From Monocercomonoides exilis PA203 (Eukaryota; Protista; Preaxostyla), in assembly GCA_001643675.2 (NCBI GenBank), contig LSRY02000002.1, positions 310,001-374,000 of the forward strand: a DNA stretch of 64,000 bases, read 5' to 3'. Positions 35,500-58,226 of the stretch are shown one piece after another (position 1 is the first letter of the stretch; every line of letters starts with the position of its first letter). The position numbers and the translations under genes are program-made. The notes under the pieces are model-generated. The model had not been told where the DNA came from. It saw only the letters and a program-made list of their open reading frames with translations, and ran no database searches.

Positions 35500-38400
35500 A
35501 TGCGGCTACTCCATCTGGTCTGTGCATTTTTCTATTTAGCAGCTGAACAGCTTGCGTCTTTAAACCACGAAAAAGCCGCAATCAAGCCAAAAGAGCAGTT
35601 TTTGCCAGCTGTTCTTTTGACGAACAGTTCCTTGAAGAGCTCGAACCTGGTGCTGGACGAAAGAGGATGTTCTGCAGTTTTCTCGGTGGACAAGGACTCA
35701 AAGTTGCATTTGACGCGCGTCACTTCGTTGAAGCCTGTGAGCCATTTCCATCCGTCTTGCGTGTCAAGCGGGCAGTGCTTTTTTGTTAATTTTTCAGTTG
35801 CCTTCGAGGCAGCTTGGAATCGCTCTGTTTGCAGTTTGACGGGGCTTTCTGGTGGAGCAGGAAGGTCATCAGTTTTGTTTTCCTCATTTGATTCTTTGGT
35901 TTTTTGCCCCTCGAAATCTTCTTCGCTTGTCTGCGGGGGCATCGGAGATTTTGAGTCCGTTGAGGGATGCGCCTTTTCGAATGTCACAGCAAAAGAGGAA
36001 CCCATCAAGGAGCTGCAAATGGCAGACCATTTATCCGCTGTTAACTCGTCTGTCCTTCTCAACAACACTTTTTTCCGATGTGCAGACGTTTACTACGGAA
36101 CAGTTGTGCACGGACTGTCGCCAAGTTCCCCAGCTTGTGATTTTCGATCATCATTCGACCGGTTTATTCAATGCACTCATTCACAATCAACTGAAAAATC
36201 TTCAAAATTCCACTTATCTAAAACTGAGCGTAAAGAAATGGAAAAGCAGAATGGAATATTTGAAAATGAAGAATGGGTTGAATGTCAAGGGCAACAGGGG
36301 GGTGCAATATATTTTAATGGGTATAGAGTTAATTATAATTGGGATCTTAATATTAGCAATTCCGTTTTTGAAAAATGCCATTCAGAAGATAAGGGAGGGG
36401 CAATATATATACATAAAATCTACAGACACAAATGCACTGGCTGCCACTTCTTTGGAAACACGGCAGTGAATGATCCGCAAGATATATACTTTGCAAATCC
36501 TGATACTTTCCATGCTCCTGGTAACTATATTTTTTCGAATTCTTATTCAACAACAACTGGCTCTCGATTTGTTATCAATGGACAAGGTGACTTTTCTAAT
36601 TATATTGCCACAATGAACGAGCAGAGAAGCATTAAGCCTTCTGGGGTTGATGAATGGGGATGTGGATTGGGAGCCCTTCCGTGCCAAACAATTGTATATG
36701 CGTATTCAGCTCAAAGAACAAAGTATATTATGCCAATGCTCTGTGAAGAAGGCACATATGCACCCCCAACTCTGACGATTTCAGAAAAGCCTCTGACATT
36801 AGCAGGCACAGGAATGGACAAAACAACGATTGGAAACTCATATGCAAATAATGCTATTTTTATGGTTAGCAGAAACAAACTGGTTGTTCAGAATTTGTGT
36901 TTTCTGCTTTCAACGAGCAATGCAAGAATACTGAGAATGACAAGCGCCTCTTCATTTTCCTCGTCAGTTCACTCATCCAATGAACCAAATTCTTTTTATT
37001 CCTCAAATTGTGGTCAAAGCAATTCTCAGTTTGAGTCAATCAAAATCAACCAGACGGCAAACTCAGAGCTATCTACATCGCTGTTTTTGATTGAGTCTGG
37101 ACAGTTTTCTGTGTCAAAGCTAACAGCGGTTAATATTAAGCTATCGAATTCTGCATTTTCTTTCTTTTTTTTCTCTTCTTGCGACAATCCTTCGATCAGC
37201 GATTGTGTGTTCAATGGAATTACTGCGCTGTCTTCTTATACCTCAGCCTATTCTCCAATTTTTACTCATCTAAGCTCATCAAATGCCAAGCTTTCTCTTC
37301 AAAATTGTTCGTTCAACAACATTTCTTCAAAAGATTGCGGAACTGGTGGGTGTCTTGCATTCAATGCGAAATTAACATCATCGTCAAGTGATTCTTCATT
37401 TTCGAATGTTGCCTCTTCGCTCAGCATTGTCAACTGTTCTTTCAGTTTGTGCGCATCCAGGCCCACAAACAGCAAAGGAGGTGCTATTTATGCCAATTAC
37501 GGCCAGTCAAAACCAACAGCAGCAGATTTTTATGTGTTCAACACGAGTTTCAGCTCAAATCAGGCTACTTTTGGAAGCGATTTGTATTTTGTGTGCTTAA
37601 ACTTCGAAGAAAGCGTTAACGAGACACTGTTTGGCTTTGTTTCAACAGCAGAATCGATAAAAGGAATTCAAATGTCCGCTTTCGGAAACGATTTCAATTA
37701 TTTCCAAGTTGATCCTGTTGATTTGAGGATATTCCTGAAAGGTTATTTTGCAGTGTGTGTGTATGCAGCATCTGGCTCAGACAGCGTCGACAGAATTTTC
37801 TGTGGAGAAATCCGTCGCAAATGCTCCACTGTGAACTATGCACTCAGCAGATTGGCAAGTTCTTCTTCTTCTTCTTCTTCTTCTTCACATTCAAATGGAC
37901 AAAGAACTGTTTTTATTTCAGGTGCTTCAACTGTAACATCTAGCGGGAATCTTTTGAACTCAGTATCAATTTCAGCTGAAGCTACGTTAGCAGCCAAGTC
38001 TTCATTTTCATCATCATCTTCTTCTTCCTTTTCTTCTTCTGACAGTGTTAAAGCCAATCTTCGCATCCCATCTTCTGTTTCTGGTCAAAGCAGTTATATT
38101 TTCCACTCCTCTGATGAGACTTCTTTGAACAGCCTTGCATTCTCAATTGCTCCGTCAGTGACTGACGAGGTTAAACATCTGCTTCGGTCGCTTATTTCTT
38201 TGCAAAATGGAATATTAACATTGAGTGATTGCGCTTTTCAATGGGATGAATCATCGTCTAATTCTTATTCATCTTCTCTCATTCTGATCTCATCTGAACA
38301 AAGAGCAGATGCCAAGCTTGTTATCAATCAATGCACCATCAGCCATTCCGCTCCTTTGGCTATTTCTGCTCCCATCTTTGATCTGTCACAGGGTTCAATC

Positions 38401-41400
38401 AGCTCCCAGTTTTCTTCTCTTCATATTCATAATGTCACATCCAGCAGTCGAAGCTCAGCTGTCTTTGCGTTTAAGTCTATTTCTTCTTCTTCTGATTCTG
38501 ATTCTTCTTCATCGTCTTCGGAAGCCAATCCGCAGACCTCATTTTCTCAGTGCAGCTTTGCCAGCATCAAAGGAAGCGAAGGCACAAATGCACTTTTTTC
38601 GACAAGTCCATTGATGACAGGCTCAGTTGTGTTTGAGCTGTGCAACCTGACAGATTGTGTGGGAGCCAGTTCGACTGAAGGGGGAGGGATGCGATGGGAT
38701 GTGTGTGGCTCAGAAGAGATGAAGATGATCAATTGCAACATCAGCAGCTGTGCTGCGAAAGAGAGCGCTGGAAGCAGCAGAGGCAAAGGAGGAGGCGTCT
38801 ATCTGATTCTGAATGGATCTTCGAGCGACTTCCTTTTTGAGTCATGCACTTTCTCAGGCAACCGGGCAGAGGTGGGCAGAGATGTGTTCATTCAGTGCGA
38901 GAAGTTGTCGCAGGCAGCCGATTTGTCGAAATATGTGGATGTGTTTTCGAGTGCATTCGATGCAGAAAACTCGTTCTTTGGCGCAGAAAGTGCAACATTG
39001 TCGAATAATGCTGATCTGCTGGATGCGATGCGATACAGAAGCACAGTTGTGTTTGTGTGTGGGATTGCTCCTTCCTCTTCTTCTGCCATCAATTTTGCCA
39101 TCAATTCTGACCCATCTGCACCAACCAGCCAAACAGGTATCGACTGGTTTCGCTGTGGTGCTTTGGATGATCCGTGTGAAACGATCGATTTCGGTCTGAA
39201 GCAAAAGGCAGCACCAGAAACGGAAGCAGAAGCAGAAGAAGATAAAATACAGACGATAAAAGTGAAGGAATCTTCGTTCATCAAAGCAGAGATTGACCTT
39301 TCTGATTCGATTTTGACATCCGCAAAAGAAAGCGAGGAGTGCAGAGTGGATTTTGTTCGGTCGATTCCAAAGGCAACAGGAACTGCTATCACAAACACGA
39401 AAACAATGAAAATGGCTCATGTTTCGTTCAATGTTCCAACTTCATTCACAAATGGCATGACACTCCTGATTTCCTCGCAAAGTGGAACAGCAAAATTCGA
39501 GTCGTGCAATTTCTATTTGAATTCATCTTCTTCATTTGCCCATTCAAATGGTAATGCTGATGCTGATTCTTTCTCGTTTCCTCTTGTTGGGGTGTCTTCG
39601 GGTGTGCTGTCTGTTGTTTCGTGCTGCTTTGGCTCAAACTCAGCAGTCAATTTTGGTTCTGGTTTGATGGAAATCAGCGACTCAGTCGACTTCACCTTTG
39701 ACACAGCAACATTTCAGAATTTGTGTGTGCATTCTGATTGTCTCTTCAAAGTTGTGCATTCAAACGAGCCTTCTCTGCTTCATTCGACTTCTGCTTTTGC
39801 TTATGCTTCTGCTCCAACAAGAGCACAAACAGAACAAACAAAAAGAGAAGGAGAAGGAAATGTTTCTGATGAAGATTTTTCAGAGTATTCATTCAAATTC
39901 ATGAACTGCACATTCAACTCGATCTCTTCAGTCTCTTCAGTCTCTTCGGCTGTTCAGACTGGAAAAGCGTCGCTTCTGTCTCCTAAACACGCTGTGGGTG
40001 TTGTTCTGTCGAACTGCACTGTCTCCACATGCCTCTCTGAAGGATCCCTCGAAGGAGGAGCACTTCGCCTGTCTGCCTCGTGTCAGGCGCCTTTCACTCT
40101 GAAGAAGAGCAGCATCAGCAGCTGTGCATGCAACACAGCCAGCGGAAAGGGCGGATTCTTGTTCCTCTGCTTGGACGGAAGAGATGCTGAATTCAATTTT
40201 GAAGAGCTGACATTTTCTGGGAACGAAGCAAAAGTTGGGGAGAGCATGTTCCTCGCTTGCACAGAATTGAATGCTTCCATCAAGACTTCGAAGTTCAACT
40301 TTGATTTCTCTGGTTTTGCAGGGAACATCAACGCCTTTGTTGGCAATGACACCAAATATGGAAACACAGATTTGACAGTGTTTCTGTTTGCTTATTTGGG
40401 AAGCCCAATCAACGTTGGCTCGGAAGGATTGGATTCAGTTGGGTGTGGTGCTCATGTTCCGTGCTTCTCATTCTGGACATCTATAAAGCATATTGACACA
40501 AACGCCAGCAACAAGCGAATAATCATAACCTCTTCAACAGACATCGAAGACGAACACGACATTTCTGGGCTGACAATATCATCGCAAAATGCTTTGGACT
40601 CACTTTCTGGCTCGCCTTCGCCTTCTTCAACGCTTTCCATTCATTCCAAACTGAACAGTTTGAACAATTCACAAAAAGGTGTGCTTGTCAATTCTCGCAG
40701 AGCCACAATAGAAGATGTTCTTATTTCGATTCCTTCGTCCTTTTTGGATGGGAATTCTGCTTCGATCAATGAGAATGTGCTGTTTGCGAGTGAATGCGAC
40801 GATGCAGCAGATTTGGGAGGGAGTGGGCTGAGTCTGACGAAATGCATGTTCCAAAAGCAGACAGATGAACCTGTGAAGTTCAAGTTGGTTGCTGCCATGA
40901 AAGGGAAAGTGTCTCTGTGTGATGTGTGGGTGGAGGAGATGGCATTCAGCTGCTCTGCTTTTGCATTCAGTTCAGGTGGCGTTTTGTGGTTTGAAGAATG
41001 TCATTTCTCATCAGTCAATTTGGAACCGAAATCTTTCATAGAAATGTTGGAAGTGGAAAAGCCGAAAAATGAAAGAGAAAGAGAAAAAGAAGGAGAAGGA
41101 GAAGGAGATTCATCAACAGCTGTTCTTCTGTTGAACGCTTCTTCATTCAGCAGCATCAACAATGGAGCATCGAATCCGTGTTCTTCGATATTCTCTCTTC
41201 AGAACAGCTACGAAATCGATGTTGTTGGATGCACTTTCCAGACACTCGGCTCAGAAGGATGCAAAAAGGGAGGAGCGATGTCTTTTGAGCTGAAAGGGGC
41301 AGATGGACAGCTGAAGATGAGGAATGTGGGAGTGACGAACAGCATCTGCAGCAGTTCTGAAGGATTTGGGGGTGGAATCTATTTGATATGTGCAACAGAC

Positions 41401-44400
41401 AACAATGACAGATATTCATTTGCAGAGATAAGTGTTGGAGGAAACAAGGCACACCAGGGAAGAGATATGTTTATTGTGGCGAATGATCTGAGGAATGGTG
41501 TGAATTCTGAATTGTTTGCATTTGCGACACAATTTGAGGACAAAACGAATGCTCTGGTTGGGTTTGACAGGAGCTATTTCAACGAGGCGGTTGATCTGAT
41601 GATTTTTGTGGAAGGCTTTGTGAGTGCATCTGTTCTGGTTGAGGCGCCAGCAGGGCAGAACGAGGTGTTTTGTGGGAACAAATATGTTCCGTGCCAGTCG
41701 CTTGACTATTCAGTCAAACGACTTGCCGAGTGCAATGCAGATGTGCCACTTCGCGTGATCACTGTGAAGTCGAATGGCTCGATCGAAAATGACATTTCGC
41801 TCAACTCAGTCAATGTTGTGTCATTTGGCAGAGGAAACAGCGGGATTAACATCAGCACCAATACTCAGTTTGCATCTGGAAGTGTTGTTTCATCCATAGC
41901 CGATCTTTCGTTCTCTTCGATCGATTTTTATATTCCTTCTGTTTTTGCTATTGAGACACCCGAAGGTGCTTCGTTGTTTTCCTCTTCGACAGAAACAGGA
42001 AACATCCAATTTTCATCGTGCTCTTTCATTCTCACTTCTTCAGAATCGCAAGATGTTTCAAGTCGCGTGCATTTGATCAGCGTTTTGGGTGGAGTTGTGC
42101 AGCTTTCTCAGTGCCATGCAGATAAAGCAACATTTTCTGCTTCGCCTTTTGTGATTTCGCAAACAGCCCAAGCTTCATTCGAGGGAGTTAGCTTTACACA
42201 TCTATCATTTTCAGCTTGCTCACTTTTCGATCTGATTTCTTCAACACCAGAAGCAAAAAATGATTATTCCTCTTCAGCCAATCAAGAATCTCAGCCAGTT
42301 GAAATAAGCTTCAAGAACTGTGAATTCAAATCTCTCCATGTGAGCGAGTATGACGAGCAGCCTTCGTTTGGGTCTGTTCAGCTTGAGACGCATCTGTCAA
42401 TTGTGAACTGCTCTTTGGATGATTTGACATCTGGATTGAGTGAGGAAGGTGGAGGAATGAAAATTGAACTTGGAACAGAAGGAAGCTTCTGTCTGAAGGG
42501 AGAAAATTCTGAGCAGTTCAGTTCTGTTAGCCATTGCACTTGCTCGACTTTTGTCGGAAAAGGAGGGTTTTTGTATTTGAGCTGCTGCAACTCGATTGAT
42601 GGATTCACTTTGTCTGACTTGGTATTTTCTGAGAATGAAGCATTTGTTGGCAGAAACGTGTTCATATTGAGCTCCGATTTGAATGCCTCTGTTGTCATTG
42701 AAAGGTTGATGTTTGATTGGACTGAATGGAAAAACACAACAGCTTTCTTTGGGGCAGATGAAGTGAACTTTACAGAAGGCATATCTTTGGACAAGCTGCT
42801 GTTTGAGCACACAGGCACTTCTGTTGTTGTGTCGTCGAGTGGAAGAGACATTCGCGGGTGCGGATCAGAAAGGGAGCCTTGTCTGTCGTTTTGGGAAGGA
42901 ATGAGGCATTTCAGAGAAGGAGTCCAATTCAGAGAAATCAAAATCAACACAAGTGCTGTCATTTCAGACGAGTGGGATCTTTCAAACAGCTCAATAAGCA
43001 CAGCTGTTCCTTCTTCTCCTGGTTATTCTTCTTCCTCCTCTTCTTCTGATGAGCCTTCGTCAGATGAATGCACAATCAATGTGGGAAAAACGATTCAATC
43101 TCTTTCTGAGCCTTCTGAGGCTGTGCTCACAAACAAGCTTATGCTCACATTCACCTCCATCAATTTCTGCCTGCCTTCGTCTTTCGAAACACCACAAAAG
43201 GAACTTCTTTTCACTGAGGCAGGAACAGCCACACTTAACAAATGCTCCTTTGTGATGCAGACAGCAGAAGAAGGCATTGCGTTTGTGCTTTTCCATGTTT
43301 CGTCTGGGACACTTTCGATTGAAGAGTCCAAAATGGCCGAGCTCTCCTTTGCGACATCGGCCATCCGACTTGCTGCGCCAGCTGCACATTTTGTGGCAAG
43401 CACGTTTTCTGTTGATGTTCTGAATTTTGCAGATGGATCGTTTATTTCTGTGGGCGATACAGAAGAGAAAGGAGATGAGGAATCAAGTTTATCAGGGAAT
43501 GGCAAAGAAATGATAGCGAGCGAAATCAGACTGGAGAATCTTCAGTGGCATCTCATCCGCAGCACAAGTGCGAAGGCATCGATCATTTCTTATGAGAGCG
43601 CGCTGTCTGTGGAGCTGACGATGGACAACTCGACATTCAGCGACTGCAACAGCGAGTCTCTTCTGGGAGGGGCGTTTTGTGTGTGGATGAAGGAGAAGGC
43701 GGGTAGGTTGGCTGACAGCTGGGCAAATGAAGGCAGTCTGGTGGCGAATCTGTCTTCATTTGTGACATGTGCGTGCTCAACGAGTGAAGGCAGAGGAGGC
43801 GCAATTGCATTGAATTGTCTGGACGATCCAGAACATTCAGATGCACAGTCTGCGGAGAAAGCGAAGGCTCTGCCAATCAAATTTCGGCTGATTCGGTTTT
43901 CTTTGAACAGAGCGAGTGTGGGGAAAGATCTTTTCATTGTTAGCCGATCGATTGCTGAGCAGATCAACGAGGCGCTGTTTGCGATGGACTTCAGCGAGTT
44001 GGCCTTTGACAGAAATAATGCCATCTTCGGGATGGACAAAGAAAACGAGGAGCTGATTGATTTGGTGCCATTTATTGTGTTCTACAAGTCAGAGCGGATA
44101 TTTGTGTCAGCAGAGAAAGGGAAGAACGAGAAGGACTGTGGGCGAAGGGAAGACCCGTGTGAGACACTCAGCGAGGCTGTGCGGCATCTGAACAACGAGC
44201 CATACCAGAGCGTGCTGGTGGTGAAGAAGGCAGCTGTTTCAGCGGAGATGGCCATTTCATCAGCGACAGTGCAGACAGTCGGAGGCAGCCAAGCTGTTTT
44301 TGAGTTCAACTGCGAAATCGCTCAGACGGATGGAAGTGCAGATTGTGTTGTGTCTTCGTCTGAGGAGTGCAGCATTTTGGGGATGGACATCGTCTTCGGA

Positions 44401-47328: not shown

Positions 47329-47640
47329 GAGTGGCAGCAGAGCTTCTGTTTATTTGTTGTGATTTCAATAGGAAATAAGTCAAGAGCACAGAAGCACAAG
47401 AAAACCAAAAAGAAAGCTATGAATCTTCCAATCGATTTGCTCAAAATTATAAAGATTGTGAAAATGAATAGATTTCCCTCTTTCTTCTTCTTCTTCTTTT
47501 TCTTCTCTTTCTTCTTGTTATTCTTTTTGAACATCATTTTTCAAAAGAGCTTTATGTTTTTTTGCAATTTTTTGTTCTTTCTTTTTTTGATTTTTCGTTT
47601 CGGAGTATTGATTGATTTGTTCTCATTTAGCCATTCCTTT

Positions 47641-48129: not shown

Positions 48130-51100
48130 AAAGGGCACCAGTGTTTAGCTTTGAAATAAATCATCGCAGCTGAAGGGCTGTTTTGCAGCACCTGGCGATG
48201 AAAAGCAGCACGAAAGATACGCATTCCTTGCAGATGAATCCAATAAGCTTTGAAACTCTGAAAAGTCTTTGCTTAACTTTGATAATGAAGGTAGATTCCA
48301 TGACAACCTCAACATGTTCCGAATGGTAATTTCAAAAGTGTCAGTGAAATGGTCGGGTGCTTCTTCCTCGCTCTCTCAGTTGCGACTTTTTGTTCATTTC
48401 TTCACCATCTTCTGCCTGGTATGTTGAATTGTTTGCTCCTTCACTTGACCTGCCACGTTTCTTCTTTCTTTCGTCTTCCTCTTCATCTTTTGCATTCTTT
48501 GTCTCATTCTTCATTTCATGCTCTCTTCTTTGCGCTGCCAGAATGAGAAACGCTTTCATCTTCAGCCACTTATTCGCTCTAACAACAAGCATGCTCGCCA
48601 TAACGTATTTGATGGTAAACGAGGAGCCAAACGATGTGCTCGACATTGAAATTGTACGAAATGGCAATGAATGTGATTTTGGCGCAGAAGCAGAAAAGGC
48701 AGAAGAAGAACAAGAAGATGACGATGATATTGATGAAGATGAAGATGAAGCAGAAGAAGAAAAGGAGGATGATGAGATGGAGGAGGAGATGGAGGAGGAG
48801 ATGGAGGAGGAGGAGAAGAAGGCGCATTTGATTATTCTGATGAAGCTGATAAAAAGCGCGGAAATGCAGATGAGAAAGAAGGGTTGAAAAGAAAAGGAGA
48901 AGGTTGTGAAGGAACAGTAGACGAGGAACAATTGACAAATTGCGAGCCAAATGGCGATGAAGGGCGCAAAAGAGCATTAACAGAAGAAGAAATAGAAGAA
49001 GAAGAAGAAATCAAATCACTTACAAGAGTCAAAAGAAGCACAGAAGATAATTGCAATGAAGATGCAGTGGAAAAGGTAAATGCAGCTGAATCAGACGAAA
49101 ATTATTTAGAAGCATTCGAAGAAGGAGGATGCACTGCCAATGCTGTTGCTATTGAAGCTGCTGGTGGGATGCCTATTTCAGTTGTGAAAAAGGGATGAGG
49201 AAGAGAAGAAGAAGAGCCACGCACAAAACTGCAAGGAGAGCCAGATGACTTGTGGAAAGAAGAGCTGGCATCCCATCTCGCCAACTTCGAGGAACCCAAG
49301 GGAAAATGTGATATCTTTAGCTTCGGAAGAGCAGGCGAAGACACATTTGCCGAAGGGTCACACGGCGAGGGAGGAGACGACAGCGCCAAAGACAAGCTGC
49401 CCTGCTGTGCCGCCTGCTACTGCACTGCCATCAGGCTCTTCAGCCGCTCCATCTCAGTCCTGCTCAAAGTCCATGCACGCCAGTGAATGAAAAGCGACTG
49501 TGAATGCGACACAGAAAGAGCACAGAGGACAGACAGCGATGCCATCAGAGAGAATGCAATGCACAGGATGAGCTGCGGGGCAAGTGCTGAGCGATAACAA
49601 AAACAAGAAGTAGAAGATGAAGAAGAATGAGTACTGAGAACATAACGATGAGGAAGAAACAACAGAGTGTGCGAGCGTCGGATCAAAGACGGCTGCCAAA
49701 AGCTGCTGAAGCTCCTAGTCGATGATTGCTACAAAGCCTCTATTGAACATCCCTGCTCGTCTGCCTCGCATCGCTGCGCTGAACACAGACACCCAAATAC
49801 CCTCTTCTCTGAAGAGCTATCTTTTTTCATCCGTCAATGATCCATGCCTCTCGCCCCCTGTGCCATCAAAGGTTTCAGCACTGGCAGCGGCATAAACAAC
49901 CCATCAAAATTGGTCGCATACGGAACCAGCGCATTAATCTCTTAAAATACTGCCTCAGCTGACAGTGGCACATTCAAAACATTCTACTCTGAGGCACTTC
50001 TACAAAAACAAGAAAAAAAAAGAATAGAAATTCATCAAATAAAAATGGAAATAAAAATTCCTACAAAAACGCACACACAAGTCTCTCACATCCAATCTCT
50101 CCTCTTTTCAGAAGACACTAGCAAATCATTCGATAGTCGATCTTTCACATCTTTCGTATTCTTGTTCATCCACTGTATTTTTTTTTTTTTTTTTTTTATT
50201 GCAAACATTAGAAACTGCTCAAAAAGTTTGCCATCTTTTCCTTTCAATCAATCCTTCATCGTGCTTGTAATTATGTTAATGAGTTACCATTAATCATTTT
50301 TTTCCCTTTTCTTTTCTCTTCCAAAACGACGATAATGAATGAGGATGCATGAAAATAGCATTTGACTGGTTTGTTTCAATTGCATTTCTCCATTCTTTGC
50401 ATCCACAATCATCAATGTTGTTTGTTCTTTTCCTCTTCAATAGCATCTCAATCTCTTTCTCCAAAAAATTCTACCAGTTTGCAGAATCATCAGGAATTTC
50501 TCGTATAACTTCCATGTTCCTATCAAATGAGAAAATAATAATAAAAATAAACATTTTCATTTTTCATGAAAATATTCGAATAAAACAGAGTTTGTCGCTA
50601 CCATTTGCAAATAGCACATATTCAACGCAACTCCTTTGCATTAACAAAATATGTTCATTTTCGCTTATTTCTTCATTCTGCCTCTTTCCCTTGAACTGAA
50701 ATTTCATCTCTTTCTGCCAAAAATATACATCAAAAACCCAACCCAAATGCTCATATAACCTTGTTCTACGCACCCCATCCCTTCTGCGAAAAGTGCCCAT
50801 TTCAGCAGTCGAAGCAAAAACAGTCATTTCTTTCAAAATATCGAAAATAACTTCAAATAAAAATATTACAAAAAAATCCATCAAAAGACATACATTTACA
50901 TGTGGCGCAGAACCACAAAACTTTCATCACTCATACCTCTTCCATTCATCTGTTTTCATCAATCTTCACAACATTCATTTCTTTCTCAGATGCCTTTTCT
51001 TATGAAAACACATACATTGAAATTATATGCTCTTAATCAAATGTTATTCTATCTCGGAAGCAGATATTGCTGGACAAAAAGTGACGGCTGAAATATCAGA

Positions 51101-51140
51101 ACATCAACAAAAATGGATGAATCATCCTCTATTATTCATC
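48130..51140 (-). pseudogene. Decayed multi-exon Ser-rich gene of unknown family
   Basis: Co-framed minus-strand ORFs 49417-49686, 49102-49395 and 48832-49056 are separated by single stops, then shift frame into 48341-48931. Exon-like blocks at ~50060-50170, 50320-50520 and 50590-50850 lie between AT-rich intron-like spacers. Boundaries approximate. Confidence 0.55.
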
Positions 51141-51290
51141 GGATCATAAATAAAAAGAGATATACAACAAAAGAAAATATTTATTTTTTTATAACAATAT
51201 GATATTCAACAAAAGTTGAATGTTATTTTTTTGATGATGTGCCCATATTAGTCTGTGATCGAAAAAAGAAAAGAATATTGTTGGAGAGGC

Positions 51291-54200
51291 ATGGTATTTG
51301 TGTTGTCAGGAATATTTTATTGTGTGTGGATAATTAGTGTGGAGAGCATGTGCAAGGGTGCCACAAGCGATGGAGCAGGATTTAGAGAGGAATCAGCGAA
51401 TGAAGGAGAATTGGATTATCCCAAAGGCACATGGCGAGAGAAGGCTCAAAACAACAAACATAGAGATGACCATTTATTTGATGCATATGTTGAAGGAAAA
51501 GAAGTTGAAGTGAGAGAGACCTGGAAAGAAGAGAAAATGATGAAGAAATTCATAAAACAATGGAATGAAGGAGGTGGAGAGATTGGGAAAGTTCAAAAAC
51601 GGGGTTTTTGTGATGAGTGGAAAATGTGGGGAAAGGAGGGTGCGCGTGGTGGGAGTGGGGTTGAGGGAAGTGTTGTTGCGGTCAATTCATCAATGCAACT
51701 GAATTCATTGGGATTGATGGAAATCGGTGGGGAGAGTGTGCTCAGGGCATCGGATGGAAGTTTTGTTGAGGTGAGTGGCTGTGTTGTTGGAGTTGAGAGA
51801 GAGACATCCCCCTTTGATTTTTGTGGGAGCTGTGGATTGCTCAACAACATTTCCCTCAGATCATCTTCAACCTTGACAGAACAGATATTTCCTTCACTTT
51901 TCTCTTCAAAAGCAATGGAAGGGGAGATTTCAGAGAAATGCCATGTTTCTGTTTGTTCTTCACAATTCTCTTCGTTTTGTGTGTCTTCGGCCCCATTCCT
52001 CTCATCCCCTTCGATGCCCCTTGTATCTCTTTCCAAACTGACCTTCTTCAACATCTCCACAAATCCATCGAAAACTTCACATATGGCTGAAGGGCTGGAT
52101 CAAAGTGCGTTTCTGATGAGTGGGTGCTCATTTTCATCAGTGTGGGATGTGTATGATGGGGGCATTGTCCCTTCACTGAACAGCCCCTCATCATCCTTGG
52201 CTGCCTCGAACACCTCATTTGTCAGGTGCTATCGCTCTCAGAATGTCGCAATCAGCGGGAGTGAAGGGAATCCATCGAAACCAGCGAGACAAAATCAGAC
52301 AGACAATGGGGCGAATTCGTTCACCTGGTGTGAGTGGAATGGCTCAAATACAACTGGGACAAGTGATTCTGATACAGATGGGATATCGAGCGGAGGTTCC
52401 ATTTGCATACATGATCTGCCATCAGGATCACTTTCTGTGAAATTTTGTTCGTTCAATGACTGCTATGCGTTTTATGCGGGGGGAGGAATTATGTGCCATG
52501 AGATCAGTTCTATCAAAATCGAGAACAACTCGTTCAACGCATGTACTGCCAAAAATTATCGTGGAGGAGGAATGTATGCTTATTCGATAGCTTCTTGTGT
52601 CAGGATAAGTGGTTGCGAATTCAAGAAATGCACAGCAAATGGCTATGGAGGAGGACTTTATCTGGAATATTTTCAGGTTTCGAATCCTGACTGTATTGGA
52701 ACGGAAAGTGGGAAAGGGGAGAGTGCTTGCGTGTTTGAATGCTCGTTTGCTTCATGTTCAATTGCATTTGATTGTGGTGGTGGAATGTATTGCCAAGATG
52801 TTCCGGCTGTATTCAAAATGAGGAACATCCAATTCATTTCTTGCAATGCATCGTCAACTGGCGGAGGATTGAGTTTTAATCCAAGTCAATCAACAGCACC
52901 AAGCAACAACATTTATTGCTATTTCTTCTTCTTCCACGATTGCAGATGCACAACCACTTCCACTCCATATGGCCACGATGTATTTTTCCAGGATAATAGC
53001 AATCTTTTTTCGTCGAGCAATCCATTCCATGAATCATTTTCAACAAAAAGCGATGATTATAGGGTGTGCTATGAATATTATTCGGACGGTTGGAAATATC
53101 AGCACAAAGAAAAGAAGTGGTGGTTGATGGATAAATTTTTGGATCGGTTTGTGGGGGCGAGTGGAGATGATTTGAATGAGAAATGCGGAGAGAATGAAAT
53201 TCTCCCGTGCAAAACAATCGGGCACGCGGTGGAGGCGAGCATGTTGGGGCTGAGTTCGACAATCACAGTACTAGTTGGGATGCATGTGAGCGAAGTGTCA
53301 ACGATCAGTATTGGGGAAAAGAAGATTTCTATAATTGGGAGAGGGAAGACAGCGAGCGTGATTGGGACGAATTCTCTTTCTCCGTCTTCGACAACGCTGT
53401 TTAGCATATCTTCTGGTCAACTGGAGGTGGGGCATTTGGGGATCGATCACAACGCAGCAAGAAGCTCGTCTCCGAGTGTGTTTGTGGTGTCTGTGGGGAG
53501 CGGGTCGCTTTCGCTGGAGGATGTACTGATATCAGGAACAACTGGAGGAAGTTCAATATCAGCATCTGTGTTTGAGGTGGAGCTGAGGCAGCTGAAGATG
53601 GCTGATGTGGAGATAAAAAATTTGAAAATGAGCCAACCTCTGTTTGCAGAACCACCATCATCAGGATCGTCATCAGGAGAGAGTGTTTTAGCGAATGTGA
53701 CAATTCGGAATGTGAATCGGACAACAGGAGATGGCGTGGTGATGGAAAAGAGTGTAAATGCAGGAGAGACATTTGTGGTGTGGAACACAACAATGGAAGG
53801 GTGTGAGTGCGTAAATGGGAATGGAGGAGGGATGAAGATTGAGTTGGAAGGAATATCAAGCAAAGCTCGAATTGGAGATTCAACATCGCACAGCGGTGGG
53901 ACAACAGCAATTTATCAATGCAAGAGCAGTGGAAATGGAGGAGGGATGATGCTTTCTTTGGCAGGTTCAGATGCAAAGTTTGAGTTAATTGATACTCTTG
54001 TATTTGATGGAAATGAGGCAGAATATGGAAAGAACATGTTCGTTTCGGCAAATGATTTAAACGCTTCGATTACAAATGATTCATTCAAGTTTAATTATTC
54101 CTCAATGATAGATGATAAAACTTTGTTTGTAGGAAGTGATAACATTCATTCAAACAAAGATTTGTTCATGTTCCTCGTTCCATACAGCTCCATTGAGATA

Positions 54201-57200
54201 TTTATCTCATCCGAAGGATTTGACGTTGCAAGATGTGGAAGTGAGGAGGAGCCATGCTTCACAATGTGGAAAGGGATGGAAAATATGAAAAAGGAGATTG
54301 GAAAGAAAACAATTCAGATTGAAGGATCAACAATTATTCAAGATTCATTCAACATGTCCAATTATCAGATCAAAAAAAGTGTAAAGATGGGAGAAGAAGA
54401 GGTGAAAGCAATGTTGAATTTTGAAAAGGCGATTGGAAGTCAACTGGAATATTTCATGGGAAATGATATTCATCTTGAATTGATAAATATCCAATTTCAA
54501 CTAGCATCGGGATTTGACAACTCGGCCAAAACAATTATTTCAAATATAAATGGAGATCTTGTGATAAGTGGATGTGCATTCCATTCAGAAGCAGGAGTTA
54601 ATAATGGATTTGATTGTGCGTTTGTGGATGCGATCGGAGGAAGTGTGGAAGTGAGCGATTTGTCGATGGAATCGTGCAATGTTGGAAGCAGTATTTTTGT
54701 CATTCGCGATTCTGGAGTTGTTTGCCATTTGATGAATGTTCGAGTGGAATCATTGAATGAAAGTGGAGGATGCATTTTGTCAATCAAGAAATCTGAGCCA
54801 GGATCAAAATTGAAAAACAAAAATGAGAAAATAAATCTTCAAATTGAGAAATCATCATTTTCAGGAGTGAAGAGGAGCGACAATGGAGCGAGCATTTTGG
54901 AATCTGCGAGTGAGAATAAGATTTATTTGGTTGTGAATGAGAGCAACATCGCAGAAGACAAAGCAGAAACAAGTGAAAAAGGAGGAGCAATATTCTTTAT
55001 GTTGGGTGCATCTGGATCAATGAAGATGATTGACTCAACAATCAGTCATTGTTGCTGCAGCAACAGCACGGGAAGAGGAGGAGGAGTGTATCTTGCAACA
55101 AAAGAAAGAGGGGAATTGAATTTCACATTTATGGGAATGAAATTCAGTGCAAATACAGCAAGCGTGGGGAATGACATTTTCATCGAATGTAATAACATCA
55201 CATCGCAGATCAATGAAAGCCAATTTCAGTTTGATCTCCGAGAAGGTCATTATTCGAGAATAAATGCGATATATGGAAGAGATGAATGTGATTATCAAAG
55301 TGATTCAGATCTGATTGAGTTTGTGACTATTCATCAGAGTGACACGATCATTGTGAGCAGTGCGGTTGGATCGAATGACAGACAATGTGGAACAATCACA
55401 CTTCCATGTGCTTCAATTGATCATGGTCTGATGCATTTGACCTCAGATATTCTGAGTCTGATATTTGTTGTTGAAGAGAGTGTGATTGGAGGAGAGATAA
55501 ATCTGGAGGAGATGAGTTTGAGCTCGAAGAGCAGAGATTTGTGTGAAGTTGAAGTGAAATCAAGCATTGGAAAAACAAGAGGGGAATTGATAACAACAAC
55601 AGGAACAGTCTCGTTGGTGAGAGTGAACTTTGTGTTTGATTCGAATTTCATTTCTCAACATGAATCACTGATATCACCAGATGGAGGGATTCTTGAAATT
55701 GAAAATTGCTCATTCACAACAAAACAATCTGATGAAGAAGGAAATGCAGAATTTGCAAACATTCCATTTCACATTATAAAAATGGGAAAAGGAGAATTAC
55801 AACTTGATGGATGCACAATATCAAATCTCATTCTTCAAAAATCTTCAATGAATCTATCATCATCACTTCCATCAGTTATTGATTCATTTACAATATCCAA
55901 TTCAACAATTAAAACTTCTCTGATAGATATAAATGAATGTGGACAATTAGCAATTAAGGATTTCAATACAGAAAATATCACAGTTGAAGGAAATGATGAA
56001 TCATTGATATCTTGCTTGTCAATGAAAAAGGCAATTCAATTGACAAATTGCACAATGGGTGGAGTCTGTTCAAAGACTATAAAAGGGAAATTGATGAAAC
56101 TGGAAAATTGTTTCGATGTGAAAATTGACAGCTGCGTTTTTGATGGAAGTTCAATTGAAAGAAATAGGCAGAATTTGAATGAAGAAGAAGAGATGTGCAA
56201 ATGGGATGGATCTCTTGTGGATGTTGTGAAGAGTTTTGTGATGATGAAAGATTCAACATTATCAAATTCACCAGAATTTGGAATAACAATGAGTGGAGGA
56301 AATGTGATAATTGAAGCAGGGAATTTCTCAAATAACAATCCATCTATTGAAAGATATCCATCACTGAGAAGAAACATCATCTGTTCAGACTCAGGAACAT
56401 TGAATGTGATGAGTTTGAAGGGAGGAGATGGATTGGAAAGAAACACCTCACTTTGGATGTTGAATGAAGGGTGCAGTTTTGAAGGGATTGTTTCTGAGAG
56501 GGATTCATCATTTTTCATTCCTGTTCTGGAGAGTGTGGAAGCAAAAGAAGAGACAGATAGAATGAAATTGACATTCAAAGGGATACTTCTTGTTCCATGC
56601 AATCTGTCATTTTCAGTTGTGAAGAAGAAAGGAGAAGAGAAAGAGATTGAACATTATGATTTTGATTCAAATGGATTCTTATCGGAAAGAGAAGTTGAAG
56701 GAAGTGTGGGAAAAGATCTTATCAGCAACTGCGGGGACGAGACAGAAGTGAGTGTATGCATTCTGTTTGGAGATATCAATAATCCATCTTCAACTGATTC
56801 TTTCATTCTGAAAAACAGAAGTGAGCCCAAAACAAATGGAGATGCGAGGATTGCTGAAGGAGGAAAAGAAGGAAAATCGATTTGGCCAATCATTGTTGTA
56901 ATATTGGCTATGATGTTTCTAATTGTTCTTATCGTATCAATAATATTGGCGGTTCGATGGAGAAGGGCAAAGAATGAGAATAAAGATCTGAGAGAGATTG
57001 TGAACGATACAGTGAAAAAGGATCCGAAGTTGATTGAGATGGTGACGATGGAGATGTCTCCAGAGGCACAATGGAGGAGAGCAGAGAGGGAGGCAGAGAA
57101 GAAAAACGAGGAAAGAATCAAGAAGAGAGTTTATGAGAAAAGCCTGGGACACTCCGAGTCAGAAGAGCATTTATTGTCTGAATGTGGATCGACAGAATAT

Positions 57201-58226
57201 ATTCTGGGGAAAGATTCAGACAAGATCCCAGAATGGATGTTGGAAAAATTGGAAGATGAAGAAGAAGATATTTCGAGAAAGCGAACTCCCTCACCATCCA
57301 TTTCATCCACTTCAACAACTGATTCAGATTCCACATTTGTTCGAGGGGAGGATCTGTGCCCAACAACCTCATCGATGTCGAATCTTGTGGATGCAATGGC
57401 CTGTTCATCCCCTCATGAAAAGCTGATTGTGGACTTGAGAGATTCATTGTTCATGCTTCTTCATGGAAAGAACAAGACAAAGGAGATGGCGATTGGCTCC
57501 TTGAAGGAGAGGGAGCAAACAGCTGCTCAGATCCTATTCTGGGTAGCTAATCTTGCGCTCCACTCCTTTGATGAAATGGAAAATCCACTTCAATCATTAT
57601 CCAATTTGAGTCCCCACATTGTATTATTCTCTGAGCACATGGTGATCTGCATTGTGATGCACTCTGACTTCTCATCTGATTCAGATTCATCGTCTATCTC
57701 TTCATCAACAGTTGTGACATCTGCAAGTGATGATAATGATGATGATGATGACTCTCTGCCTTCATCAGCGTTTGAGGATGAGGATGATTTCAGGAAGGAG
57801 TGCTTGAGGTGGAAGGCGCCAGAGCTGCTGGTGAACAAGAAGATGGAGGCAACAAAGAGCTCAGTTGTGTTTTCGATTGGGATGATGCTGTGGGAGATCC
57901 TGACGCTGGAGATTCCGTTTGGGGAGTATGAGGCAGCGATTGCAGGAGACAAGAATGTTCGTGGGGAGAGGCCGAGGATGGGAGATGAGCAGTCGAGTCT
58001 TGAAGAGGTGGTGAAGGAATGCCTGTCAGCTGAGCCATCAGAAAGACCATCGCTGCAAAATCTGAAGAGAGAGTTTATTCAGCATTTTCCAGCAGGTTCT
58101 GCAATGATAACGATGCCAGATGCGATCGATGTGACGTGCATGAGATCGAGTCAATATACGATCAACAAAAGCGGAAGAATCATCATTTTGGAAACAAAGA
58201 GTGAATGTGAAAATATTGAAGAATGA
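51291..58226 (+). CDS. Second single-exon receptor-like protein: signal peptide, Cys/Gly-rich beta-helix tip, 3 stalk modules, TM helix, degenerate kinase C-lobe; ~2,311 aa
   Basis: ORF 51255-58226 with first ATG at 51291 (MVFVLSGIFYCVWIISVES). GGGIM/GGGMY/GGGLY...C.F..C repeats. TM IWPIIVVILAMMFLIVLIVSIILAV-RWRR at ~56880-56966. LRWKAPE, VVFSIGMMLWEILTLEIPF and CLSAEPSERPS. Confidence 0.88.
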   Translation: MVFVLSGIFYCVWIISVESMCKGATSDGAGFREESANEGELDYPKGTWREKAQNNKHRDDHLFDAYVEGKEVEVRETWKEEKMMKKFIKQWNEGGGEIGKVQKRGFCDEWKMWGKEGARGGSGVEGSVVAVNSSMQLNSLGLMEIGGESVLRASDGSFVEVSGCVVGVERETSPFDFCGSCGLLNNISLRSSSTLTEQIFPSLFSSKAMEGEISEKCHVSVCSSQFSSFCVSSAPFLSSPSMPLVSLSKLTFFNISTNPSKTSHMAEGLDQSAFLMSGCSFSSVWDVYDGGIVPSLNSPSSSLAASNTSFVRCYRSQNVAISGSEGNPSKPARQNQTDNGANSFTWCEWNGSNTTGTSDSDTDGISSGGSICIHDLPSGSLSVKFCSFNDCYAFYAGGGIMCHEISSIKIENNSFNACTAKNYRGGGMYAYSIASCVRISGCEFKKCTANGYGGGLYLEYFQVSNPDCIGTESGKGESACVFECSFASCSIAFDCGGGMYCQDVPAVFKMRNIQFISCNASSTGGGLSFNPSQSTAPSNNIYCYFFFFHDCRCTTTSTPYGHDVFFQDNSNLFSSSNPFHESFSTKSDDYRVCYEYYSDGWKYQHKEKKWWLMDKFLDRFVGASGDDLNEKCGENEILPCKTIGHAVEASMLGLSSTITVLVGMHVSEVSTISIGEKKISIIGRGKTASVIGTNSLSPSSTTLFSISSGQLEVGHLGIDHNAARSSSPSVFVVSVGSGSLSLEDVLISGTTGGSSISASVFEVELRQLKMADVEIKNLKMSQPLFAEPPSSGSSSGESVLANVTIRNVNRTTGDGVVMEKSVNAGETFVVWNTTMEGCECVNGNGGGMKIELEGISSKARIGDSTSHSGGTTAIYQCKSSGNGGGMMLSLAGSDAKFELIDTLVFDGNEAEYGKNMFVSANDLNASITNDSFKFNYSSMIDDKTLFVGSDNIHSNKDLFMFLVPYSSIEIFISSEGFDVARCGSEEEPCFTMWKGMENMKKEIGKKTIQIEGSTIIQDSFNMSNYQIKKSVKMGEEEVKAMLNFEKAIGSQLEYFMGNDIHLELINIQFQLASGFDNSAKTIISNINGDLVISGCAFHSEAGVNNGFDCAFVDAIGGSVEVSDLSMESCNVGSSIFVIRDSGVVCHLMNVRVESLNESGGCILSIKKSEPGSKLKNKNEKINLQIEKSSFSGVKRSDNGASILESASENKIYLVVNESNIAEDKAETSEKGGAIFFMLGASGSMKMIDSTISHCCCSNSTGRGGGVYLATKERGELNFTFMGMKFSANTASVGNDIFIECNNITSQINESQFQFDLREGHYSRINAIYGRDECDYQSDSDLIEFVTIHQSDTIIVSSAVGSNDRQCGTITLPCASIDHGLMHLTSDILSLIFVVEESVIGGEINLEEMSLSSKSRDLCEVEVKSSIGKTRGELITTTGTVSLVRVNFVFDSNFISQHESLISPDGGILEIENCSFTTKQSDEEGNAEFANIPFHIIKMGKGELQLDGCTISNLILQKSSMNLSSSLPSVIDSFTISNSTIKTSLIDINECGQLAIKDFNTENITVEGNDESLISCLSMKKAIQLTNCTMGGVCSKTIKGKLMKLENCFDVKIDSCVFDGSSIERNRQNLNEEEEMCKWDGSLVDVVKSFVMMKDSTLSNSPEFGITMSGGNVIIEAGNFSNNNPSIERYPSLRRNIICSDSGTLNVMSLKGGDGLERNTSLWMLNEGCSFEGIVSERDSSFFIPVLESVEAKEETDRMKLTFKGILLVPCNLSFSVVKKKGEEKEIEHYDFDSNGFLSEREVEGSVGKDLISNCGDETEVSVCILFGDINNPSSTDSFILKNRSEPKTNGDARIAEGGKEGKSIWPIIVVILAMMFLIVLIVSIILAVRWRRAKNENKDLREIVNDTVKKDPKLIEMVTMEMSPEAQWRRAEREAEKKNEERIKKRVYEKSLGHSESEEHLLSECGSTEYILGKDSDKIPEWMLEKLEDEEEDISRKRTPSPSISSTSTTDSDSTFVRGEDLCPTTSSMSNLVDAMACSSPHEKLIVDLRDSLFMLLHGKNKTKEMAIGSLKEREQTAAQILFWVANLALHSFDEMENPLQSLSNLSPHIVLFSEHMVICIVMHSDFSSDSDSSSISSSTVVTSASDDNDDDDDSLPSSAFEDEDDFRKECLRWKAPELLVNKKMEATKSSVVFSIGMMLWEILTLEIPFGEYEAAIAGDKNVRGERPRMGDEQSSLEEVVKECLSAEPSERPSLQNLKREFIQHFPAGSAMITMPDAIDVTCMRSSQYTINKSGRIIILETKSECENIEE

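Follow-up and report, generated by a model that had tools for sequence, protein, structure and literature searches.

The window, a 64,000-nucleotide stretch of contig LSRY02000002.1 from Monocercomonoides exilis PA203, contains two uninterrupted open reading frames on the + strand, at 35422–47328 (3968 aa) and 51255–58226 (2323 aa), referred to here as genes A and B. Each is a single exon, in agreement with the initial annotation, which described them as a same-strand and apparently intronless pair. Gene A is likely to start at M27 (35500), where MONOS_1932 begins too; MONOS_1932 is 85% identical to gene A over its full length. Similarly, gene B is likely to start at M13 (51291), where P0001, a database protein, also begins. 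A hydrophobic signal-like stretch follows each of these methionines, and a hydropathy scan finds exactly one strong hydrophobic span in each protein. The parts of the two genes are as follows, in window coordinates.

35500–47328, + strand: gene A, a predicted single-exon type I membrane protein of 3942 aa from M27, with the frame open from 35422
35500–36627, + strand: signal peptide of gene A plus its N-terminal cassette, bearing CADVYYGTVV and two copies of GGAIY
36628–44103, + strand: gene A stalk of six β-helix modules, from anchors, alignment and module HMM (aa 403–781, 782–1233, 1234–1663, 1664–2072, 2073–2468 and 2469–2894)
44104–46302, + strand: gene A terminal partial module and extracellular juxtamembrane region, with a near-invariant block at 45514–46239
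46303–46407, + strand: gene A transmembrane span (aa 3628–3662, hydropathy scan)
46408–47325, + strand: gene A cytoplasmic tail of 306 aa, an acidic, proline-rich linker and then a kinase C-lobe remnant
46999–47304, + strand: Pfam kinase match in the gene A tail
51291–58226, + strand: gene B, a predicted single-exon type I membrane protein of 2311 aa from M13, with the frame open from 51255
51291–53150, + strand: signal peptide of gene B plus its N-terminal cassette, bearing VWDVYDGGIV and five GG[AG][ILM] motifs
53151–55352, + strand: gene B stalk of two β-helix modules (ORF aa 633–982 and 983–1366), the second of which was folded
55353–56870, + strand: gene B terminal partial module and juxtamembrane region, with a near-invariant block at 56178–56855
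56871–56963, + strand: gene B transmembrane span (ORF aa 1873–1903, hydropathy), modelled as a long helix
56964–58223, + strand: gene B cytoplasmic tail of 420 aa
57792–58073, + strand: Pfam kinase match in the gene B tail

Both genes therefore have the plan that had been proposed for them: a signal peptide, modules, a shared juxtamembrane block, one transmembrane span and a kinase C-lobe. In the gene B tail, a helical membrane-proximal segment is followed by a conserved linker and then by the C-lobe, which runs from αD (~57447) to αI and has its activation segment replaced by an acidic, serine-rich insert. Gene A belongs to a short-tail subfamily ("A-type"), with 37 database relatives whose tails are ~300 aa long, and gene B to the main long-tail subfamily ("B-type"), with more than 120 paralogues that are 67–81% identical over the last 684 aa.

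The two genes are members of a large family. A DNA pattern for the juxtamembrane block has 505 matches in the M. exilis genome and 0 in the control, so that the family numbers at least ~500 copies and not the few that would have weakened the initial proposal. The best 120 relatives are all M. exilis proteins. A profile of the juxtamembrane block finds 807 clusters at 50% identity (E ≤ 0.001), and matches near E 1e-45 are Blattamonas proteins of 2000–3800 aa. The proteins of Blattamonas nauphoetae have the same architecture, and their tails likewise match the kinase model only at positions 160–257. On these comparisons, giant type I membrane proteins form a family in oxymonads, to which genes A and B belong as members of its two different tail subfamilies.

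The juxtamembrane block is nearly invariant: in 61 members, 14 of its columns are invariant and ~40 more are at least 90% conserved. The strings that the initial annotation quoted from this region are found in both genes, within the near-invariant block. Exactly one membrane span is present in 119 of 120 sampled members.

The extracellular part is built from repeated modules, each full module being ~400 aa long and opening with a near-invariant C-G-x(4–7)-P-C. There are six full modules in gene A and two in gene B, each set being followed by a terminal partial module; the gene A modules start C-G-x-P-C and end GKGG..F.F...F.GN.A..G.D.F. The module boundaries were set from the Cys anchors and the HMM. 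Comparison of either protein with itself by BLAST shows no internal HSPs, as the identity hit masks them. The Cys anchors, the alignment and the module HMM agree that the proposed Cys-capped stalk modules are true repeats. Across the family the number of modules per protein varies from 1 to 7 or more, and the length of the protein follows as ~1170 + 409 aa times the number of modules.

The N-terminal cassette of gene A is found at 76–87% identity in five paralogues. The motif that was proposed as common to both genes (CADVYYGTVV in A, VWDVYDGGIV in B) is real, but it is limited to one type of cassette: among 156 sampled members, 25 carry a single DVY.G..V, compared with 1 match in shuffled sequences. 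Among paralogues, identity over the N-terminal 400 aa is essentially uncorrelated with identity over the C-terminal 300 aa (r = 0.09), and in 72 pairs with different tail types the N-terminal cassettes are ≥60% identical. P0001 and P0141 are alike at both ends of the ectodomain, yet their tails are of different types and their module regions differ in length by ~1600 aa. These comparisons show that N-terminal cassettes, module numbers and tail types are shuffled among paralogues.

The structure of the second gene B module was predicted using AlphaFold, with good confidence (pLDDT 90.8, pTM 0.90). The model is a three-sheet right-handed parallel β-helix, the pectin-lyase-like fold. VIA-align matched it to right-handed β-helix proteins with Z of 22.7–17.7 and rmsd of 3.1–4.4 Å, over 275–320 residues in all but one match and at 6–14% identity; the best match had Z 22.7 over 295 aligned residues with an rmsd of 3.8 Å, and almost all of the 50 matches listed were right-handed β-helices. 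The top 50 Foldseek matches all have this fold (best E 1.5e-3). The β-helix, which had been a guess made from the letters, is thus shown by the predicted structure. A model of the membrane-proximal ectodomain of gene B (P0001:1355–2311) is all β over residues 1–490, at pLDDT 70–96.

The sequence relatives of the modules are consistent with this fold. A profile made from 128 modules found six metagenome proteins (E 3e-9 to 8.5e-4, computed for 5.8 billion sequences), which carry PF02415 or PF13229, with PF02415 present in five. Structural matches in a protein atlas (TM 0.62–0.75) fall mostly in Beta_helix/Chlam_PMP or β-helix-type clusters; the atlas neighbours carry PF02415, PF07602 and PF13229, and the protein-language and structural neighbours agree. 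Pfam found nothing significant outside the kinase part in the whole proteins or in ectodomain pieces, the Chlam_PMP match to the gene A N-terminal cassette being below threshold at E 0.12, and the module profile had no significant match among PDB sequences (E 0.76). We therefore regard the modules as probable remote homologues of Pmp-repeat and Beta_helix surface proteins that do not reach the threshold of a curated family; the kinship with Pmp-type repeats that had been suggested from short motifs is borne out by the profile matches to PF02415/PF13229 proteins.

Across the 128 modules, every column that is at least 90% conserved is G, C, P, F, A or L, and none of the conserved columns is acidic, basic or histidine. 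This pattern speaks for a role in structure or binding and against a common active site. N-glycosylation sequons are more frequent in the part placed outside the cell than in the part placed inside (1.6 vs 0.5 per 100 aa), as is cysteine (3.6% vs 1.7%), and this excess is a hint as to the topology.

The tails are half a kinase. The Pfam model PK_Tyr_Ser-Thr (PF07714) matches the tails of genes A and B above the gathering score (E 4e-9 to 5e-10), but only at positions 160–257 of 258. A profile of the family tails aligns with PDB kinases from αD onward only, with TNNI3K as the best match (E 1.3e-13), followed by TAK1, Roco4, EphA2 and MLT; by sequence, the C-lobe is closest to kinases of the TKL group. 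Alignments of six genuine M. exilis kinases with 157 members never begin before kinase position 71, and Foldseek superposes the tail model on kinases over only ~95 residues (2–2.5 Å, 24–30% identity). The tails contain the elements of a kinase C-lobe, namely the APE motif, the subdomain XI arginine and helices αD to αI. The N-lobe, with its Gly-rich loop, VAIK lysine and αC glutamate, is absent according to Pfam, the profile comparison with PDB kinases and the alignments of 157 members, and with it the ATP site. The most conserved stretch of the tail, the linker, is predicted to be disordered (pLDDT <50). We note that the 40 residues before αD (…SNLVDAMACSSPHEKLIVDL…) resemble by eye a relic of β4–β5, in a region where AlphaFold confidence is low.

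The catalytic residues have also been lost. Among 82 members, the column of the HRD aspartate contains N in 43, Q in 30, S in 6 and D in 1, the catalytic-loop lysine position contains S or C, and the catalytic-loop asparagine position contains I, S, T or A. At the DFG stretch B-type tails have HSD(L/C/F) and A-type tails have a deletion, so that the tails do not have the combination of HRDxxxxN loop and DFG aspartate found in active ePKs. By contrast, the structural residues of the C-lobe are retained: the APE columns are kept in 80–82 of the 82 members and the subdomain XI arginine in all 82, with little or no variation in the C-lobe W, A, P, E and R. The tails are therefore predicted to be an enzymatically dead kinase C-lobe, and the description of a dead half-kinase tail holds, with the C-lobe alone present and the HRD aspartate mostly replaced by N or Q.

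Matches to PF07714 that span positions 2–258 inside giant open frames do exist in the genome. With the exception of one ordinary family member, the longest ORFs at these loci, inspected as pieces that were partly misplaced or ended at 10 kb, have neither a membrane span nor module matches. Eight of the full-span domains were translated, and read as kinases that include SNF1-like, NEK-like, Wee1-like and two TKL sequences. No family member with an N-lobe was found among the full-span loci examined.

The tail is under strong purifying selection, judged from its substitutions in 12 genes (pN 0.07–0.11, pS 0.53–0.56, ω 0.08–0.12), while constraint on the ectodomain is weaker: ω is 0.2–0.4, and dN/dS reaches 0.5–0.8 in the first ~170 aa of gene B. 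Gene conversion was considered as a cause of the tail conservation and rejected, because ~54% of the synonymous sites in the tail differ; together with the low dN/dS, this points to purifying selection instead. The strong constraint fits a scaffold that is active inside the cell. As averages over gene regions, the ectodomain values indicate no overall positive selection.

Expression, whose absence would have spoken against the initial proposal, is found for gene A. RNA contigs match its tail and stop codon exactly, at 46788–47189 and 47289–47450, in four runs from one study; they record presence only and carry neither expression level nor strand. The same runs include spliced contigs of a neighbouring gene, and therefore hold real RNA. 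Contigs at 51.4–52.0 kb, in gene B, carry mismatches and may derive from a paralogue.

The family is almost certainly one that has already been published under another name. The searchable text of Karnkowska et al. (2019; PMC6759080) describes the largest gene family of M. exilis as "protein tyrosine kinases", 320 of 332 being TKL, and that of Treitli et al. (2021; PMC8767320) reports that these "PTKs" overlap unclassified repeats. Our family is likewise the largest in the genome, is found via PF07714 and overlaps the unclassified repeats. The published papers count its members as kinases, whereas we find giant β-helix membrane proteins that have neither an N-lobe nor the catalytic residues. 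The searchable text of the two papers does not describe the ectodomain, the lost N-lobe and catalytic residues, the juxtamembrane block, the shuffling or the selection. The system is thus not undescribed, as first proposed, in that its genes are known as kinases.

Several known systems resemble parts of these proteins. The closest functional analogy for the tail would be the KIND domain, which is also a kinase C-lobe without N-lobe or catalysis and serves as a protein–protein interaction module, although in cytosolic proteins of the animal lineage rather than in receptor tails. When three tails were searched with hmmscan against Pfam-A, no KIND model was listed at E ≤ 10; the tails match only ordinary kinase models, and the resemblance is therefore convergent and not family membership. 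Large families of single-pass proteins resembling receptor kinases occur in another anaerobic gut protist, Entamoeba histolytica. Some of these TMKs are catalytically dead and some have been implicated in phagocytosis; they combine a bilobal kinase domain with an ectodomain of Cys-rich CXXC repeats. They are at most analogues, from which the β-helix modules and half kinase set our family apart. The receptor pseudokinases, such as human HER3, RYK, ROR, PTK7 and EphB6 (PMC13259870) and the plant RLK pseudokinases, are also single-pass proteins with a kinase-derived intracellular domain, which in their case signals as a scaffold, but they keep the whole bilobal fold, have unrelated ectodomains and number a handful of copies rather than hundreds.

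For the ectodomain, the closest likeness is to the chlamydial Pmps (PMC11166332, PMC10715098, PMC2997323), which share the right-handed β-helix with coil motifs of the GGA(I/L/V) and F..N types and, like the present proteins if these are indeed at the surface, are adhesin-type surface proteins in polymorphic families. Pmps are bacterial autotransporters with a C-terminal β-barrel, whereas the present proteins are eukaryotic, are built from Cys-capped tandem units of ~400 aa, and have no C-terminal outer-membrane β-barrel translocator, the C-terminus consisting of one hydrophobic helix and the tail. Phage tailspikes and depolymerases also have a β-helix rod followed by a small β domain, and Foldseek aligns the membrane-proximal ectodomain of gene B with CBA120 TSP2 over ~530 columns (E 4e-5); they are, however, trimeric viral enzymes, and ~10% identity implies no sequence relationship.

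As a whole, these observations are best explained by recognition receptors whose output is a dead C-lobe, and on balance we lean towards this reading. The proteins would lie in the plasma membrane with the β-helix chain outside, where it would bind particles or glycans; the likeliest targets would be the surfaces of gut bacteria, which are both cohabitants and food. Occupancy or clustering would be relayed to the cytoplasm via the dead C-lobe and the conserved linker, which, by analogy with KIND domains and receptor pseudokinases, may form a docking scaffold for partners in the cytosol, for example active TKL kinases or the machinery of uptake. Breadth of recognition would come from the size and shuffling of the repertoire. 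The lack of overall positive selection in the ectodomain counts against a receptor, since a fast arms race might be expected to produce it. A stronger form of the proposal, in which tip cassettes, modules and tails are recombined into an oxymonad system of combinatorial recognition that feeds a single invariant juxtamembrane and C-lobe output, is rather unlikely.

The proteins could alternatively form a variable or protective surface coat, a thick glycosylated glycocalyx with possible switching between copies, in which the tail would serve only for sorting and anchoring. Large families of surface proteins are found in Giardia and Trichomonas, and the size, diversity and shuffling of the present family, together with ectodomains that are long, rigid, sequon- and serine-rich β-helix rods, give this explanation an appreciable, if clearly minor, chance of being right. 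Such coat proteins, however, have very short tails, whereas here no other part of the gene is as constrained as the tail of 300–420 aa (ω ~0.1, with synonymous change saturated), which is kept across genera and has invariant structural salt-bridge residues in its C-lobe. It is improbable that the modules are instead active glycoside hydrolases or lyases, anchored in the membrane for surface digestion of bacterial or dietary glycans. The top structural matches are indeed β-helix hydrolases, lyases, epimerases and phage depolymerases, but at 6–14% identity, and the pure adhesins PfbA and Vag8 use the fold too; moreover, the 128 modules lack any conserved column of the acidic, basic or histidine type, and their sequence relatives, the Pmp-repeat proteins, are adhesins and not enzymes (PMC2997323).

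Retained kinase activity, with the C-lobe completed in trans by a separate N-lobe or working by an atypical mechanism, is very improbable. Many genomic PF07714 matches are limited to positions 2–165 in short open frames, and B-type tails keep the aspartate of the HSD stretch at the DFG position. The search, however, matches exon by exon, so that the simplest source of the short N-terminal matches is single exons of ordinary kinases whose genes have introns; the catalytic-loop aspartate survives in 1 of 82 members, the Lys and Asn positions are changed and the A-type DFG is deleted. We know of no split protein kinase of such a kind. A selfish or decaying repeat or pseudogene family without cellular function is close to refuted by ω, which is far below 1 along the whole gene at a synonymous divergence of ~0.3–0.57. 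Some copies do contain stops (e.g. C43:34557–36611, where the longest open frame ends at 1766 aa), and RepeatModeler, according to the searchable text of PMC8767320, placed a large part of the family among unclassified repeats. Nevertheless, of 65 copies scored, most are free of stops in the matched tail and most lie in open frames of 2000–4500 aa (~10 are under 1500 aa), the architecture is kept in another genus and RNA contigs exist.

At ~500 genes of 6–13 kb, the family occupies roughly 4–5% of the 82-Mb genome by our estimate. It is the largest single investment of the model amitochondriate M. exilis, and has so far been taken as an expansion of kinases; its module and its juxtamembrane block are domain families for which Pfam has no model. 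If its members are not kinases, the published M. exilis kinome is too high by hundreds, and the genome's largest family turns out to be a surface-recognition system. It would also provide a natural example of a receptor in which a kinase C-lobe alone is under strong selection, making the capabilities of a lone C-lobe directly testable. Should the combinatorial proposal be true, the family would be a single-celled analogue of innate immune or prey-recognition receptors, signalling through half a kinase without a known receptor counterpart. The finding is also relevant to the way in which a gut commensal that feeds on bacteria recognises the microbes around it.

The window (C14:310001-374000 in the 82.3-Mb, 101-contig M. 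exilis genome) contains two genes, A and B, of a receptor family of giant β-helix membrane proteins with a kinase C-lobe tail. They are flanked by ordinary cytoskeletal genes (KAP and CLASP), and the features are as follows:

4238-6412, minus strand: KAP (kinesin-associated protein), E 2.6e-38
7128-10298, plus strand: CLASP, E 4.8e-30
19637-31858 (perhaps also 31881-32558), minus strand: 4074-aa open frame
35422-47328, same strand as gene B: gene A, uninterrupted open reading frame, 3968 aa
48133-50756, minus strand: further transcribed, spliced gene in the 3.9-kb space between A and B
51255-58226, same strand as gene A: gene B, uninterrupted open reading frame, 2323 aa

Gene A is likely to start at M27 (35500), the first residue of its 85%-identical paralogue MONOS_1932, and gene B at M13 (51291), the first residue of its database protein P0001. 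Just downstream of both lies a hydrophobic stretch that resembles, and probably is, a signal peptide. Both proteins contain a single strong hydrophobic span, which lies 306 aa (A) or 420 aa (B) from the C-terminus, and 119 of 120 relatives likewise have exactly one. The ectodomain is predicted to lie outside the cell, a topology that fits the excess there of N-glycosylation sequons (1.6 outside vs 0.5 inside, per 100 aa) and cysteine (3.6% vs 1.7%).

The gene between A and B has RNA-contig joints at 49999/50079, where the CT..AC ends read GT..AG on the minus strand, and at 50518/50601, in three or four RNA runs, and contains ORFs of 176-196 aa at 48341-48931. The 4074-aa frame has no Pfam match at E ≤ 0.001, no membrane span and no kinase end; lacking the latter two, it falls outside the receptor family. 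A language-model search with its last 1500 aa gave ATG2/VPS13-type proteins as neighbours (score 0.81-0.87), which is a lead only.

Identical RNA contigs at 46788-47189 and 47289-47450, from four metatranscriptome runs of one study, span the C-lobe and stop codon of gene A, although level and strand cannot be read from contigs. The same four runs include spliced contigs of a neighbouring gene and therefore contain RNA, and cover is zero in some intergenic bins. Contigs over the 5′ part of gene B are mismatched and may belong to paralogues.

The last 684 aa of gene B match 611 database proteins, the best 120 of which are all M. exilis ‘uncharacterized protein’ entries, 67-81% identical to the query. 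A first look at the genome gave 1962 candidates. Scoring 65 of them showed 76-83% identity, and most of the 65 lie in open frames of 1100-4500 aa. Searched on all contigs, a degenerate DNA pattern encoding the juxtamembrane R-R-N-I-x-C-S-D matched 505 times (258 + 247) and its reversed control 0 + 0 times, so that the family is far from being a matter of a few copies; at about 8 kb per gene it would, as a rough estimate, occupy 4-5% of the genome. Gene A belongs to the smaller, short-tail (A-type) subfamily, with 37 relatives, about 50% identical, and tails of about 300 aa. Five paralogues of 3900-4330 aa are close to gene A, and two of these lie on its contig. One copy, at C14:301890-303389 (minus strand), lies about 8 kb before the window start in divergent orientation, in an open frame of 3952 aa, and is 87% identical to gene A over the first 500 aa; a third gene A-like copy is at C14:538725. 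The closest paralogue of the gene B tail (C43:34400-41750, 81% identical) has one TAA and a longest frame of 1766 aa, and is probably a recent pseudogene, illustrating birth and death within the family.

Every sampled member ends in the same C-terminal unit of ~860 aa (A-type) or ~960 aa (B-type, the main long-tail subfamily), which consists of a partial module, the juxtamembrane region, the membrane span and the tail, in that order. The extracellular juxtamembrane block contains C.W.GS, NNNP…YPSLRRNI.CSD, GGDG, FFIP and LL.PC, and with them the strings singled out in the initial annotation; when both subfamilies and Blattamonas are compared, 14 of its columns are invariant and about 40 more nearly so. 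The extracellular 490 residues of a P0001:1355-2311 model are β with good confidence (pLDDT 70-96), and about 530 columns align with phage tailspikes in Foldseek.

A juxtamembrane profile searched among 1.84 billion representatives matched 807 clusters (50% identity) at E ≤ 0.001 and 317 at E ≤ 1e-30; at around 1e-45 the clusters come from Blattamonas nauphoetae, with protein lengths of 2000-3800 aa. Six of seven Blattamonas tails scanned match only positions ~154-258 of the kinase model; P0304, the remaining one, gives no kinase match. In JARBJD010000078.1 (11105-11140) the frame continues through one TAG into R-W-S-A-P-E … D-R-P-S-L. BLNAU_10572 is annotated to end at this TAG, and the next called gene, in frame 27 nt downstream, encodes 143 aa with a kinase Pfam match; the two models belong to a single family member, divided by a stop, a sequencing error or read-through. 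Because Blattamonas has the same architecture, including the missing N-lobe, that architecture predates the split of the two oxymonad genera.

The ectodomains of A and B are built from modules capped by a near-invariant C-G-x(4-7)-P-C, spaced ~350-450 aa, with seven in gene A (including one degenerate C-G-x-C) and three in gene B. The aligned pieces form a true repeat ending in GKGG..(Y/F)L ... F.F...F.GN.A..G.D.F. A module HMM finds 1 to 7 near-full modules per paralogue, protein length being ~1170 + 409 aa per module, and the modules are diverse (median pairwise identity 30%). The second module of gene B, modelled with an alignment of 128 modules, is all-β (pLDDT 90.8, pTM 0.90). Its top 50 PDB matches in Foldseek are all right-handed parallel β-helices, with weak E-values (best 1.5e-3). 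VIA-align (48,161 chains) gave Z 22.7-17.7 and rmsd 3.1-4.4 Å over the 50 matches listed, all but one of which align over 275-320 residues; the matches are β-helix hydrolases, lyases, epimerases, phage tailspikes, the adhesin PfbA and the autotransporter Vag8. ESM Atlas matches (TM 0.62-0.75) are mostly to Beta_helix/Chlam_PMP or β-helix-type clusters. The β-helix fold proposed initially is thus borne out. The proposed kinship with Pmp proteins holds as remote homology but not by Pfam's own threshold: Pfam gave no significant ectodomain match (a single Chlam_PMP score, E 0.12), while the module profile matches six metagenome proteins (E 3e-9 to 8.5e-4, computed for 5.8 billion sequences), five with PF02415 and three with PF13229. 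This search was restricted to proteins of 210-670 aa, which excludes the giant paralogues. Language-model neighbours carry DUF1565, Chlam_PMP and Beta_helix. The N-terminal motif DVY.G..V is real but marks only one cassette type (25 of 156 sampled members, vs 1 in shuffles).

The tails are accurately described as a ‘dead half-kinase’. Only positions 160-257 of the 258 in the Pfam kinase model are covered in A and B. A profile of 82 C-terminal cassettes matched 842 PDB kinase sequences, the best being the TKL kinases TNNI3K (1.3e-13), TAK1 and Roco4; the alignment runs from helix αD to the end of the C-lobe, with nothing aligned to the N-lobe. Likewise, phmmer alignments of six genuine M. exilis kinase domains to 157 members never begin before kinase position 71 (αD). 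Across 82 members the HRD aspartate position is N in 43, Q in 30, S in 6 and D in 1. S or C takes the place of the catalytic-loop Lys, and I, S or T that of the Asn. B-type tails read HSD(L/C/F) at the DFG stretch, and A-type tails have lost it by deletion. R-W-x-A-P-E is invariant, as is the subdomain XI arginine. In structure, no more than about 95 residues superpose on kinases (2-2.5 Å, 24-30% identity), and the segment from the membrane to αD is modelled as a helix plus ~130 residues of pLDDT below 50.

Of the M. exilis kinases, the one whose alignment reaches deepest into the receptor tails, starting at position 71, is a TKL-like domain within an 861-aa open frame at C5:1365458-1366297. 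It keeps its N-lobe (VAVKK), has HGD for HRD and GFG for DFG and, among bilobal kinases, may be the tail's nearest relative.

Selection was scored in 100-codon windows after codon alignment of gene B with 11 genomic paralogues that are similar in length. Omega is 0.5-0.8 in the first ~170 aa, 0.2-0.4 in the ectodomain and 0.08-0.12 in the tail (residues 1899-2176; pN 0.07-0.11, pS 0.53-0.56). The low pN in spite of this pS indicates that the tails stay nearly identical because purifying selection acts on the protein, the predicted-disordered stretch included; the pS rules out recent duplication and gene conversion. N-terminal (400-aa) and C-terminal (300-aa) identities are almost uncorrelated (r = 0.09, 3360 pairs), and 72 pairs with different tail types have a common N-terminal cassette (≥ 60% identity). 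Gene B and P0141, another database protein of the family, have both ectodomain ends in common (61% and 72% identity), P0141 having about 1600 aa of extra modules and an A-type tail. These comparisons show the family to be a mosaic whose parts can be exchanged.

The initial annotation called this a candidate undescribed system. The genes have been annotated and counted, but described as kinases: Karnkowska et al. (2019) write of the largest gene family in M. exilis that it ‘encodes protein tyrosine kinases’ (TKL 320/332; PMC6759080), and Treitli et al. (2021) that the ‘PTKs’ overlap unclassified repeats (PMC8767320). The accessible part of a 2023 Preaxostyla comparison does not discuss the family, and no paper found in our literature search links Monocercomonoides with pseudokinases, β-helices or Pmp. 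The true architecture therefore appears to be unpublished.

Several explanations of function were considered. A surface coat whose tail serves only for sorting is rather unlikely, though the most credible of the alternatives. Membrane-anchored depolymerases would suit the hydrolase and lyase matches of the fold, and are improbable: module columns conserved at ≥ 90% are G, C, P, F, A and L only, which argues against a shared catalytic site. Kinase activity completed in trans would have to work with the replaced catalytic residues and is very hard to credit, and a selfish repeat, for proteins with such constrained tails, is the least plausible of all.

We favour a receptor. The best analogies for the tail are receptor pseudokinases (PMC13259870) and KIND domains, in which a C-lobe without its N-lobe serves as an interaction module (PMC2064798, PMC11231147); a Pfam-A scan of three tails did not place them in the KIND family. 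The original interpretation is borne out in part, in its architecture, fold and dead C-lobe. In the receptor reading the β-helix rods would bind glycans or particles, and the C-lobe and linker would transmit as a docking scaffold. The finding would then be a receptor pseudokinase with an adhesin-type ectodomain.
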